Program-made: the position numbers and the translations under genes
Shown: positions 36,860-44,169 of the stretch, piece by piece
Numbering within the stretch: position 1 is the first letter of the stretch
How the letters are laid out: each line of letters opens with the position of its first letter
The notes under the pieces: generated by a model
Told to the model about the DNA's origin: nothing
Seen by the model: only the letters and a program-made list of their open reading frames with translations
Databases searched by the model: none
DNA from: Calcarisporiella thermophila CBS 279.70
Taxonomy: Eukaryota; Fungi; Calcarisporiellomycota
Direction: 5' to 3'
DNA length: 64,000 nucleotides
NCBI RefSeq assembly: GCF_041956535.1
Contig: NW_027192208.1
Span: forward strand, 78,761 to 142,760

Positions 36860-39195
36860 GGTTTGGGAAAGAAACGATATGGTTGGCGTGAGAGAAAGAG
36901 GCAAATATTAAGGAGAAGAAGTATAAAAAAATCGTCCAATTTCCTTTTTTCAGCAAAAATGGGAGACAAAAAAACTAGCAAGCAGGTCGCAGGAAGGGGG
37001 AGAAATGGCCATTAGACAGACGTCAACAATGATGAGGATGTTTCAAATACTATGAACCACTTTTCGCTCTAATATAAAATTGGAGAGAAGAGAGGATATG
37101 CAAAAGATGGAAATGCATAAAAAAATTATATGAAGTCACACTGTTCAACTCAGCTGACCTCTTATTCACAAAAAAAAAACCTCGATTTTCCAACCAAGTG
37201 CGCTTTTCCTGAAACTCCCATATAATTCCGCGCGAAAGCAATTGTTTAATAATAAGCACGCAATATGGATGCTTACCAATTCATCACCCCCACCACACTA
37301 GGCTATGCTCCTACTCTGATCCCACTCTCAAACTCGACTATTTTAGTGGCATTCGAGCGATTATTCTCTTATACTTCGGTCCGAGCTAGTAGTGGGTCTT
37401 TTCTAGTGGATTTATTCCTATTAAGTCAACCTAGTCTTCAAATTATGGCCTGAAACAATTTCTGACGTCTATGTGTTACATCATAGTGAACGCGACGATT
37501 AATCGGACTTTAAACCTACCTATTACCAGAACTATGTCAATCAAAAATATTATTAGTATATTTGGTGAGATAATGGAGAATAGAGTATATAAAGACCAAT
37601 CACATCAAACTACCTTGATTACAAAGCACTATATGCTAGTAGAGAGAGAAGATAAATTTTGATGATTTATGTGAGGAGTCTTGATAATAAAATATTGGTA
37701 CGAACTGTAGGTTGCCATCTAATATGCCACTTAAGAGCCTGCTGGCTAGAAACAAGAGAACTACTATTACAGACATATTTGTCTAAAAAATTTAGATTTG
37801 ATGCAATAGAAATTATCCATAAACACACTTGTTGTATATAACTAATCAATGCGAAAAGTCTAAGAGTCACAAAAGATTCAACAAATAATTGCACTTAAAA
37901 CAAAAAAAATTCTGATGTGTAATGCAGAGGCCACAAGATCTCTGAGGCTGTTGGAATTTCACGGTTATAATATTTATATTTACTGTATATTACTGGATTG
38001 CAGCACGTTCAATTTTCATCTACGTAAAATCATTTTGATCTACCACAATTTTTCTTAATATATCCACTATACAGCTTCATCTTAAACTCTATATCAAGGG
38101 TTAGATGTGAAGTTATAGTAAAAATTGAACAAGTACTACTTTCATAACTTAAATATTAAAGTGGATATATATCACCTTACCAGCATATTGTTCTGCTGCC
38201 TTAAATTAGTGAATTCTTAATACCTAGAGTCAGCACACTTTGATTCAATAGACCATGAAATGCTAGCATTGATTGAGATATGTGATGTAGCGTTAGAAGT
38301 GACCCAAATGCAATCGTAATAATGATAATAGAAAGTTTTGACTCGTGTATTTTTATTTAAAGCTGTGATTTACACTTTATAGGGATGGATGTAACGGTTT
38401 CTCAAACTTTTTTTTTATATTGGAATGACTGACATACTGTATACGTTAATTTGAGTGCTAACTAGCGTTGCTACTCCCGTCCATTTATACAATCTCTCAG
38501 TAGCAGACTGTTTTAGAATGTAGCCAAACTAAGACAGTGTCTATGCGAGATAAAATTCATTTGGAAACCATGAAAAAACCCCATTAATCCTTTGAGGCGA
38601 TAAACATGTGTAGATCACTGATGTATTAGCTTGATCAGGGACAAAATCGCTAGCAATATTTCACTATAAACATCGTCATCTTATTGAGGTTATTCACGCT
38701 CGCTTATTTAAATAGGTGATATTTATGATTAAAAACATTGTCGTGTTTATAAATACTATATATGTGCAGATGTATCGCTCGGCAAGTTTAAAGCACAAAA
38801 CTTATTCCTATATGTTCAGCATTATATAATTATACAATTCTTCAAACAATATATAATGAACATTATAAAGTGTATAGATTGTTTCCAGTGATTAAATTGA
38901 ATCAAAAAGTGATTAAATTTCTAAATTGTGAATTCTCTGTGGCATTCAACAAAAAGGTTCAAAAGCATTTTAGTTGTAACTTAAGATAGGAAAACAAACC
39001 CCAGATAAAGGTCTGTTGTTCTATAATTTAATGTCAACCTCCTGGTGATTATTATTTGATGATCAAGATTCCTGATCCATTATTAAAATAAAATTATATT
39101 TTAGAATAAAAAAAAAAGAAAAGAGCGAAACAAATATAGCAAATAGCCAGCTCTACAATTAGAAATTAAAATGGCAATGATAGTAAATGAAATAA

Positions 39196-41065
39196 CTATA
39201 TTTTCTTTCCGTAAAGTTTATTAAGAAATCGAAAAATTTGCCGATGTAATGGTTTGGCCTTTTTATGCTTGACGCAATTGAGCTTGAGCATATTAATATT
39301 ATTAAGATTGGTTGCAGTACCAGGATGCTCTGATCCCAATACCTTCTCTCGTATTGAGAGCGCCCGTTGATACAGAGGCTCAGCCTGGTCATCTTTTCCC
39401 TGACTTTCGTAGAGTGCGGCTAGGTTGTTGAGGGTGGTTGCAGTAGAAGAATGCCCATCCCCATGCAACAGTTCATTTATTTCGAGTGAGAGCTCTGCAA
39501 GCTTCTCTGTATCAATAATTATCCCATTTTCCTTCAGATACATAGCCATGCGATTTAGTAGGCTGCATAAGCTCTCGGACAATGATGGGATTAAATACGG
39601 GTCATTAATTAAGTCAACTAAATAATGAACGTGTGAAATGTATGGTTGTATTATCGAATGTGCGCTAGGATCATAGTAACCATAAGACTTAGCTTTCTGT
39701 GTCTTTTGATCAATTGCATATGCTATTTTTTTGGCCCAGCTTAATTTGTGTTATCTCTCTATTGCATCATAGATAACCTTTTGAACAAGTCGATGGATTT
39801 TTACCGCTGCAAATAACTTTTCGGTGTCTTTCTCGTTCATTTTACTGGGTATTAAGGAAATAAAGGAGAATTTGTTTAGTATCGATATCGCAGTTTGCAC
39901 TTGCTCTCTTTCATCTTCATCTTTCAGTTCATTTGTTTCTGTAATGTTTAGATTCGGGTCGGCTTCAAGGAGAATATGGTAGTGGTCAAAGAGCTGAATA
40001 GAAATTTCATCAGGATAGAGAAACGCACATGCCTCGAGTAATTTAATAGCAGTAGGATTGATGTTTTGAATACGCTTCAGTGAAATGGCCCAAACTGTTT
40101 CAACTGAGTAGCTGTACTTGTTTGCGATATCCTTATCATGGAATGAAAATATACTTTTCCTGTATTTTTGTAGTCTCTTAAGATAGCCTTGATAAGTAGA
40201 GGTGGTTGCTTCCATATATGCACGTGCAAGATCTAACGCAAGTGGCATATAATCAAGTTCAGATATCACTTTACGAACGTATTGAAAATGCAAGTCTTGC
40301 CGATCAATTGATCCCAACTCTTTCTGTAAGAGTAAAGCAAGGGCTTCTTCTTCAGTCATCTTGCCGATTTCTATTATCGTTGCTTTCCAAGGAGGAATAT
40401 ACTCTCGTGAAGTCATTATGATATCACCACCTTTCCGAGACAATCTATCAAATATATCCTCAGCCACCTTCTCCTCTACATTATCCAAGAGGAGCAACCA
40501 GTTCGTATTTTCTTCCAACCAACATTGAACCCAGCTGAAAATGGTTTCTTCTGCATTATCATTCTCCAACAGAGTAGTCTCAATACCCAAATTTATTGCC
40601 AGATACCGAAAGGAGTCTGCTACCATTACCCAGCTATCAGCTTTTAGCCAGAACACGAAATCATATGCTTTATGGCGAAAATAACAATATCTGAGCATCA
40701 GTTGTGTCTTGCCCATTCCCCCAAAACCTTTGAGCACGATAATTGCGCATCCGCTCGTCGAATTCTTCTCATTAAACGACTTCAGCATTTTATCGAAAAT
40801 ATTTGGTCGTTCAATAAAATTCTCATTTTCCACCGGAACACCAAACAAAAAATTCTTGCTTCATTATAATACCCGGAATTTTTGTTTGATAACCTGGATC
40901 CACCTAGTTTAAAGATGAGCCGCTTAAGGCACACAAGTAAATTATTATCCAATGTCTCATCATACCCATACTAAAATTCCTGCAATTGACATTGAAAACC
41001 CCAGCATTAGCAAATCCTCCCCCATCTGCCTGCACTTTTCCGAAGATAGTGGATGATTGCGACAT
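39196..41065 (-). pseudogene. NLR-like NB-ARC + TPR gene, disrupted by a frameshift near 40860 and TAA at 39751-39753
   Basis: P-loop GFGGMGKTQL, VFWL, Walker B WLLLLDNV, IIMTSR, LDYMPLALDLA, IHRLVQ. The frame reads through the TAA into TPRs (TATTLNNLAALYESQGK..AEPLYQRALSIREKVLGSEHP). First exon 41065-40966. Confidence 0.85.
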
Positions 41066-43286
41066 GACGTTATTAAAAAAATTAAACTTTGATAATTTCA
41101 ATATTCTTTTAACTACTGGCTTATTGTAGCTCTGTATCATCCACAATGCATCCTGAAGAGTACTTGGATCGTTGAAACTAGCCTCAACTGGTCTTACGAC
41201 TATTAGGCTTTTTCTGTTCTAATTAAAAAATTGCCGCAGTCTAACACAATCCAATAGGCTGAGCTTATTAGGCAAGTAAATATAATATATTGAATAATCC
41301 CGACTTCAGCTCTGCTGTATATTCATTGTTAAGCAATTTAACTATTATATAACACGTAGGGCTATTTGGATCCAAGAATAAAGATATCAATAAATCACTA
41401 CATCAACAAATATTGCATTCACGGATAGTCTCGATTTTCATAACTCAATGGTTGTAATCAACACTCCATCATGAAATTCGTATGCATTTATGATAGAGAG
41501 ATGTGGCAGTAACCATTTCCATATATCACTCACCAAAACTTGAGCTGAGCTTCCAAGTTTCATGATTTGAATGAATGAATAAGGTATATCTATATATAAA
41601 AGAATTGGGGGAAAATACGAAAACTAGGCAAAGAAAATGTTTAGAAAACCCTTTGGTTCAAACCTACTACTATTACTATTACTTTTGGATGTTTAATTCG
41701 AATTGTAAAAAAACAGGATAAGATAGCATTCGAAAAATAACACATTTTATTTAATTATATATTAATCTCCCCAGCTTGTTGATATCTACTCAAATAGTCT
41801 ATTAAACCTAAATCTACGGTATGCTCTCGCAATTAGTAGGTAGGGAGAAAGGGGAATCTCGCCAAGTTGATCTCGAAGTTACATTTTCACTTTTCACACG
41901 ATTGAAATAAATTACCATTAATATGTTCATTGGTATATGAAATATTGTATATTCGATTAAGATACCATCACCTTGCGACTTATTGAAACAAACATTTTAT
42001 AAATTAATGGTATTTATTTTATTTGAGGTGGAAAATCCCTTGAAATTCGTGACTCATCAACGATGCATCCATTAATACTCTGCTAGTATTCTCTCTCGAG
42101 TTAGTGTTGCTACACCAATATTGAGCACATCAGGTCAACTTTTCATAAAAGCAATTATTCTGCTCAATAGCTAAAGCTTGCTACCTCACCGCGTCGCTTG
42201 GTATGTTCGACGATCCAAAATTTCAAAGTAGCACACACAAATGGACCCTTGTGATCAACAGAGAGTAAAATAATATTTTGCATCAGATCGAACTCCTCCA
42301 TCATGGCGGAGCCGAGGCATATGCTCGTGAGCTCCTGTTAAGCATATTGTTGCCTAGAGCCGCTCTGAGCCACCACAGCCAGGCGCTTGGTTGAAACGAA
42401 AATGAGTTTCGATCTATTGCAGAGTGAAAAATCGAAAACGTGGTCTTGCCAAGAGCCTGTGAAAATCGCCTAAATGATCCAAGTTAATATGGATAGTCTC
42501 TTTGATGGATTAAGTTGTTTTCGGGAATCCCCGTAGTCATTGAGGGTTTCATTTGGAATTTTTCCTCCAGTATCACTCCATTAAGCTCGTTGACAAGGTT
42601 AATAGGAATACTCCACTTACAGATGATTTTGGCTTGGCTACATGCCAGATTGCACAGGATAGGGCAGAGTCCCGCCACTTTTTTTCTTGTCCTCTTCTTG
42701 GAACTAAGCTCACAGTAGAATTTCTATGGAGGAAAACTCATCATTTGATCGCCACTACCCTATTTAGAGTTTGCTAAGCCCCGCATCACATTGGTTCATG
42801 CTAGCTAAGCGCCCCCCACTGGCCAAATCGAGACAATCTTCAGGTTCCTTCAAGGGTTACGGATTTTTGCCGTCAACCGCCTCAATGGAGTTAAGATGGC
42901 AGAAGTGAAAGAGAATCTCTGAAGAAAATTCCATCCTTTCATCCAGAGTTATCTCGCTTTTACTTGCATGCAGGTTAGCTTTCTCTCGCTTTAAAATGGT
43001 AAAAAAGACAGTTCACCGGAGAGTCATTATTCTATATTCTACGGGCAAAAGAATCCAATCCGAATCATTGTCCCACGATGACACCATGCAGGCCTAGCAA
43101 ACCTATCATGCCAAGATGATTTCCTAAGTGTTTTTTCCTAAGAAATTTCCTCTTTGTCCGAAATGGGTCGGTCCAAGACTTTTTTAATAACTCACCAATT
43201 CGGAGTGAATATCGGCTAATGCCATCTTATAAAAGCGGGGCCAGCAACCATCGGGTCCAATCAACACAAAACCTACTACAATATAC

Positions 43287-44169
43287 ATGAAAGATACACG
43301 TCCTCTCGACATGGAATCCGAGCCGGAAGGTCCTCTGCAGCCAGCAGCCACCCAACAGGAGTCCAAGGTGGATCATTCGTGGAAATGGAAGACTCCTTTA
43401 TATCTAATGGTGAATCTCGGCCTTACCGTCGGTGCTCCTTTGGGGCTTTATTATGGACTTAAGGTAAGCTTCATCTTATGCCATTGAGAATCACCCGAAA
43501 TTGAAGTTCTCTTTTTTTTTTTCATCATCAAAGAATAAAGTAGGCAATACCTACGCACTGTTGATTGGATCCGTCCCCGCTCTACTCATGGTGATAATTG
43601 ATATCATTCGTAAACGTCGTTTGAATGCCTTTGGCGCAGTCGTGCTCTTTGGGTTTCTGGTCAGCGCGATCTTCGCTGTGGTGACGGGCGATGCTCGTGT
43701 TCTTCTTGTCCGCGAATCGTTTGGACTTGTTGTTGTTGGAATTGCTTTCATTTTTACCCTTCTTCCTTTTCGTTGGCGTGGTACCCGATTTCGCCCTCTA
43801 TCTCATCATTTTGGGAAAGAAATGATCGATGTCCCCAATTTTGAAGGAACTGGACGTAATATGCTTGATTTAATGTGGGATGAATCGAAGAACTACCGCC
43901 GAACCCAACGGATTAATACTGGGATGTGGGGGATCGGGCTTGTCTGCGAGTTTGTTGTCAAGCTGGTGATAGCCTATGTGCTTCCGATCGACACCGCTGT
44001 CTATGTGTCCAACATCGTCAATATTGCATTTCAAGTCGCCCTCATAGCCCTGAACGTGCTCATTTCCATCATAATGGATAAAAAAACGCGCAGAGAAATT
44101 GCACAATATTTCGAGCGGCGACATGAGCAAGAGCGTGAGCAGATTCAGATTGAGGAACATACCGCGTAG
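43287..44169 (+). CDS. Multi-pass membrane protein resembling the bacterial VC0807 family, 2 exons
   Basis: About 6 TM segments. Motifs PLGLYYGLK, R.RRL...G, TGDARVLLVRES, RPL..HFG, W..S..YRR..R..T.MWGIGL. Intron GTAAGC..AAG at 43464-43532. Confidence 0.75.

Follow-up and report, generated by a model that had tools for sequence, protein, structure and literature searches.

Amyloid signalling by NLR proteins is documented in Ascomycota, has been proposed in Basidiomycota, and is found in multicellular bacteria. Within the fungi, one of the described systems closest to the genes treated here is NWD2/HET-S of Podospora anserina (PMC4344463), which likewise combines an NLR lacking an effector domain but bearing one short N-terminal motif with a matching motif at the terminus of a separate executioner protein, and whose motifs likewise show an h-x-h-G-N turn, alternate small and hydrophobic residues, and contain much N and G but little P. 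It differs in that its receptor is of the NACHT-WD40 instead of the NB-ARC-TPR type, its effector is a HeLo protein instead of a C14 caspase or patatin, and its effector motif is repeated (R1+R2) instead of single; furthermore, the genes described below are not adjacent, and their motif has no detectable sequence relationship to HET-s. In bacteria, BASS motifs pair with NLR-like proteins, and their effectors include a CHAT metacaspase (bioRxiv 10.1101/2020.01.06.895854). Our genes are reminiscent of this arrangement in their NB-ARC-TPR receptor architecture and in a caspase-fold effector that bears, at its C terminus, a motif about 25 residues long. The nearest relatives of the caspase outside the fungi are bacterial and likewise end in G/N-rich tails (P0014 and P0016). 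In contrast to BASS, the host is a eukaryote, the motif occupies an exon of its own, the caspases belong to Peptidase_C14 and not to the CHAT type, and receptor and effector do not form a gene pair. A third parallel is offered by basidiomycete NLR motifs (PMC9815663), where dozens of NLRs per genome also carry one N-terminal motif and few effectors are encoded elsewhere, including described cases of non-adjacent NLR and effector, although the phylum and the motif sequence are different and the effectors there are of an MLKL/HeLo-like type. The same survey deals with Ascomycota and Basidiomycota; caspases and Mucoromycota-grade fungi are not mentioned in it. Our literature search likewise retrieved no case in Mucoromycota-grade fungi, no fungal system in which the templated effector is a caspase, and nothing on the NLRs of Calcarisporiella thermophila.

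The window, a 64,000-nucleotide stretch of the C. thermophila genome, contains an NB-ARC gene on its minus strand that the initial annotation took for a working amyloid-signalling NLR of an early-diverging fungus. The host is indeed such a fungus, a member of the Calcarisporiellomycota. Our reading, to which we assign a probability of roughly 0.6, is that the window holds a pseudogenised NB-ARC NLR, and that intact members of its family carry out amyloid signalling to caspases and a patatin with an inflammasome-like output.

A first exon common to the NB-ARC genes

The first exon claimed for the window gene (40966-41065, minus strand) was confirmed with exactly the stated limits: a run of 33 sense codons starts with the ATG at 41065, and a single G and the donor GTATGA come after it. 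The ensuing intron 1 (40904-40965, minus strand) measures 62 nt, runs from GTATGA to CTAG in phase 1, and agrees in position and phase with its counterparts in the paralogs. As had also been claimed, there is no N-terminal effector domain, in that no Pfam domain was detected 5' of NB-ARC; for this purpose the exons were searched separately, and the frames across candidate splices were enumerated by script.

A search of the 28-Mb genome with the NB-ARC ORF of the window gave 34 matches. At least 14 of these paralogous NB-ARC NLR genes possess a homologous first exon, seen as a Met-initiated short ORF about 200 bases upstream, and the phase-1 donor G/GTAxGx (the slash marking the exon end) is common to all of these exons (14 paralogs compared). 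Both the homology of the exon and the sharing of its intron are shown here. The idea that the motif is packaged as its own exon, put forward for the window gene, thus extends to the N-terminal exons of many paralogous NLRs. In intact members, this exon comprises 25-34 codons and encodes a G/N/V-rich motif with a consensus near M-x-S-Q-T-S-x-x-x-G-N-V-H-A-E-x-G-A-x-I-N-x-G-N, followed by the phase-1 intron, NB-ARC, and TPR or other repeats, without an effector domain. The annotated paralog proteins P0042, P0043, P0049, P0166, P0167, and P0170 start with the motif exon and are spliced as the DNA predicted, the splice support in the paralogs being that of public gene models. With regard to composition, N (2.9x), G (2.4x), and V (2.2x) are enriched in the motif, and L (0.15x), P (0.18x), K (0.28x), and also E are depleted; this N/G/V-type bias agrees with the one described for amyloid motifs in fungi and for BASS (bioRxiv 10.1101/2020.01.06.895854).

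In the window copy, the G-N turn of the motif has become G-V and its His has become Gln, and it is the most divergent copy in the NLR family. Against a leave-one-out profile of the paralog first exons, it scored 19.2 bits (E 3.5e-4 among 8,866 six-frame pieces), while the top unrelated piece in the same search reached 9 bits and the other paralogs scored 35-56 bits in the full model. Since the window exon scores well above unrelated pieces, it is a true family member despite its divergence and, by the same profile score, not a chance ORF.

Caspases and a patatin with the same motif

The NLR-only profile A1, run against the whole genome in six frames, gave 19 matches at E<0.03, and every one of these was an NLR first exon, the first exon of a patatin gene, or the last 45 residues of the proteins P0001 and P0002 (E 0.017 and 0.020, respectively). 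P0001 and P0002 (351 aa and 365 aa) are, by domain and relatives, bacterial-type caspases of Peptidase_C14 (4e-16 and 6e-12; 59.8 and 46.1 bits vs a cut-off of 21.4), with the dyad motifs SGHG and NCC[FY]AGG, and in both the motif tail follows a linker that is acidic or rich in Pro. The similarity between NLRs and caspases is individually weak (15-17 bits). In a leave-one-out search, the caspase tails scored 17 bits, and the top unrelated piece stood at 9 bits; the tails align to the NLR leaders across the whole motif, the S-Q prefix included. In the reciprocal search, with a profile built from the two tails, the eight highest-ranking distinct matches other than the tails themselves were NLR and patatin first exons. 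The tails contain a single motif copy and a short G-x-h-H-F-G segment, and not two pseudo-repeats behind a HeLo domain; all effectors have one motif copy each, without a doubled repeat.

The patatin-like phospholipase P0163 (383 aa; L053:6918-8364, i.e. G000:C16, about 694.9-696.4 kb) possesses the motif exon and phase-1 donor exactly as the NLRs do, and its annotated protein starts with this exon, spliced as predicted. This suggests exon shuffling and a second type of effector, with the motif at the N terminus. Low GC and GC3 were noted in the NLR paralogs and in the patatin gene relative to neighbouring housekeeping genes. A third caspase paralog (L055:1492-2544, i.e. G000:C39:19131-20138) contains a TGA in frame; its tail, G/N-rich but divergent, perhaps also bears the motif. 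The paralog adjoins a Tc1/mariner-type transposase ORF. A second genome-wide search with an enlarged profile found no further motif carriers. Receptor and effector genes do not lie side by side: the neighbours of the caspase genes are housekeeping genes and encode a kinase, Hid1, XPD, an ALO oxidase, and a methyltransferase, and the nearest NLR lies about 9.5 kb off and has a different leader.

Hence, the same short motif stands at the N terminus of NLRs and at a terminus of separate effectors, which is the generic arrangement of amyloid signalling. As the motif is common to receptors and separate effectors, the core of the earlier idea of an amyloid-signalling NLR holds for the family, where motif sharing and composition speak for it, but not for the locus, whose copy is inactivated. 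In place of the effectors anticipated by the initial annotation, two C14 caspase C termini and one patatin N terminus bear the motif; HeLo, SesB, and gasdermin carriers and a doubled copy did not turn up.

Relatives of these components occur in other organisms. The same motif heads the NLR P0082 of Jimgerdemannia flammicorona, and in a 655-base environmental contig (L064:329-655; ENA ERZ27252350 k141_1837255) the motif exon is followed by an intron in phase 1 that starts with GTATGT and then by an NB-ARC leader, so that the architecture is present in at least one other fungus. Caspase homologs of Endogonales (Jimgerdemannia and Endogone) retain G/N-rich tails of similar length; a profile of these tails matched, weakly, only one C. 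thermophila NLR exon (E 0.026). Profile A2, searched against 1.8 billion representatives, gave single-stretch matches to C. thermophila proteins and one environmental fragment; multi-stretch A2 matches were QT-x-DGGY repeat proteins, which we judged spurious. The closest bacterial caspase homolog, P0014, is encoded in a Blastocatellia MAG (GCA_035249305.1, L066:5296-13156), between a kinase-ankyrin gene and a gene for a 1,004-aa TIR/WD40 protein. This cluster is possibly a prokaryotic counterpart of the system; by eye, no tail motif shared within it was seen.

From the distribution and composition of the motif, we infer an amyloid fold, templating, and caspase activation in the intact family, by the following route. 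Ligand-driven oligomerisation of an intact NLR would gather the N-terminal motifs, which could then adopt a cross-beta (beta-arch) nucleus; this nucleus would template the matching motif on the caspase tail or the patatin leader, and the caspase or patatin would become activated through induced polymerisation, with an inflammasome-like output. The proposed scheme is reminiscent of the animal inflammasome (NLR - ASC - caspase-1), in which a polymer seeded by NLR oligomerisation likewise propagates itself, gathers a caspase, and thereby activates it. The likeness is one of analogy only, as the animal polymer consists of death-fold domains (PYD, CARD) and not of a short cross-beta motif, and no gasdermin was found in the C. 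thermophila genome. A wider proposal, which we put forward tentatively and at somewhat less than even odds, is that Calcarisporiella and Endogonales run an inflammasome-like pathway in which a short cross-beta motif, nucleated by an NB-ARC NLR, recruits a bacterial-type C14 caspase and switches it on, with a patatin lipase acted on alongside. No earlier case of amyloid signalling coupled to a caspase would then be known from a eukaryote; the motif would have spread between receptor and effector genes by phase-1 exon shuffling, and the window gene would be dead, at most releasing free motif peptide.

Among the alternatives, the one that fares best is that the motif acts as a non-amyloid homotypic or docking peptide, for instance as a beta-strand tag for an adaptor or chaperone, or as a recognition or regulatory segment of the caspase, and does not undergo templated polymerisation. 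The shortness and low complexity of the similarity would suit such a peptide, as would the lack of a match to known amyloid families and of a doubled repeat. We nevertheless regard this as unlikely, because the extreme-terminal position after flexible linkers, the relation of one receptor family to few effectors, and a composition rich in N, G, and V and poor in P, L, and K together form the signature of amyloid motifs (PMC9815663; bioRxiv 10.1101/2020.01.06.895854), and no adaptor is known. A complex prediction with two copies of P0042:1-45 and P0001:296-351 yielded a score of 0.01, which weighs neither for nor against binding.

Resemblance to HET-s

In its specific form, the initial annotation had the window gene encode a single HET-s-type (HRAM) R0 motif on a working NLR, which would template a cell-death effector of the HeLo, SesB, or gasdermin type. 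The absence of an effector domain, the short N-terminal exon, and the alternation of hydrophobic and small residues are all compatible with this proposal, and the HET-s R2 string quoted in its favour is genuine HET-s. However, the gapless register in which the window peptide had been aligned to R2 exists but has a BLOSUM62 score of -13; the best ungapped register scores +3, with a shuffle p of about 0.4, so that by this comparison the likeness of the window peptide to HET-s stays at the level of chance. The 21-residue HET-s register has Asn at position 1, hydrophobic core residues at 3, 6, 14, and 16, and Gly-Asn at 17 and 18; in the window copy, N1 and N18 are missing. Agreement at positions 6, 14, 16, 17, and 18 of the register is seen in several paralogs, some also with N at position 1, and the paralogs of the L019 group resemble R2 beyond shuffled sequences (score 30, p about 0.0007 before correction for 18 tests), while the h-x-h-G-N turn is common to many family members.

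Profile searches gave no link to the known motif families. In Pfam at E up to 10, neither the window exon nor 18 family members matched HET-s, NACHT_sigma, Ses_B, or RHIM, and profiles A1 and A2 searched against PDB hit no HET-s, sigma, SesB, RHIM, or HELLF entry even though HET-s is in the library. Since likeness to R2 is confined to few paralogs, the turn is shared, and no profile connects the families, the HRAM-likeness is to be taken as a resemblance and not as demonstrated membership. The expected partners likewise failed to appear. The genome encodes a single HeLo protein (388 aa, minus strand, L065:3678-4844, i.e. G000:C38:7175-7831; PF14479, 180 bits), which has no NLR-type motif at its C-terminal end, and a search of the genome for gasdermin (PF04598) and the HeLo-like N domain PF17111 found neither. 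Nor is there an effector adjoining the window gene, as the motif profile run over the whole window gave nothing above 9.8 bits. Upstream of the NLR, at 43287-44169 on the plus strand, lies a two-ORF membrane-protein-like gene, which includes a 222-aa part without a Pfam match and does not carry the motif. As the gene is in addition broken in three ways, the proposal of a working HRAM receptor is largely refuted for the window locus, and we consider it very improbable overall.

The decayed window copy and the receptor family

The window gene is recognizable as a NB-ARC STAND NTPase (NLR) from an NB-ARC domain over the Pfam cut-off followed by repeats, yet its coding sequence is interrupted. The NB-ARC ORF (39754-40848, minus strand) includes a winged-helix/DUF7779 part and ends at a stop at 39751-39753; it matches PF00931 with 1.4e-8 (34.8 bits vs a cut-off of 23.5) and PF25000 (DUF7779) with 1.1e-6, and shares 57% identity with the nearest intact paralog.

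A first lesion separates exon 1 from this ORF. The sole acceptor of the family type, CTAG, starts exon 2 at 40903, and the frame that the conserved splice imposes on the exon 2 leader (40853-40903, minus strand) is one base off that of NB-ARC, which in turn is closed by TAA TGA at 40866-40861. The claimed splice of exon 1 to the NB-ARC exon consequently fails, as frame enumeration found no AG acceptor that joins the conserved donor in frame. The likeliest site of a 1-nt frameshift is a T6 run (40847-40852, minus strand), where one extra T would give a continuous frame, and which could be a homopolymer assembly error. Second, the TAA at 39751-39753 (minus strand) is a premature nonsense codon in non-repetitive sequence within a colinear conserved stretch; the frame resumes beyond it, and tblastn with P0042 reads through it. 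Third, the linker and remnant TPR array (39196-39750, minus strand) hold about 2.5 repeats, with one unit deleted and the last one degenerate, and end at a TAG. Although the TPR ORF at 39582-39196 still matches Pfam TPR_12 with 3.1e-23 (82 bits), the alignment of P0042 ends at its residue 635 of 1,099, whereas paralogs reach about 1,100 aa, amounting to a loss of about 460 TPR residues.

Judged by its frameshift before NB-ARC, its nonsense codon, and its collapsed TPR array, the window gene is a pseudogene and not the working NLR that had been claimed, and most likely it no longer signals. That the gene is nonetheless intact and functional, the frameshift and TAA being assembly errors or a GTGTGC donor at 40934 rescuing the frame, and the short TPR array serving as a minimal sensor, is highly unlikely: exon 1, its ATG, and its donor are intact, the shift falls in a homopolymer, and one alternative GT-AG pair does give an open frame, but from a non-conserved donor, while three independent defects, among them a nonsense codon outside repetitive sequence and the missing TPR residues, the most divergent motif of the family, and the position of the locus in an AT-rich, gene-poor island all oppose it. 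The island around the NLR relic (36900-43200) is poor in ORFs and has a GC of 0.36 compared to 0.47 window-wide.

Within the pseudogenised-NLR reading favoured here, the window gene is most likely a dead receptor of the proposed network. The locus itself is an ordinary decayed paralog, and its value lies in documenting turnover among the receptors. Caspase activation has so far been associated with the death-fold polymers of animals. If the motif polymerises, the family would provide short, readily testable peptides and would tie the amyloid route of fungi and bacteria to the activation of caspases.
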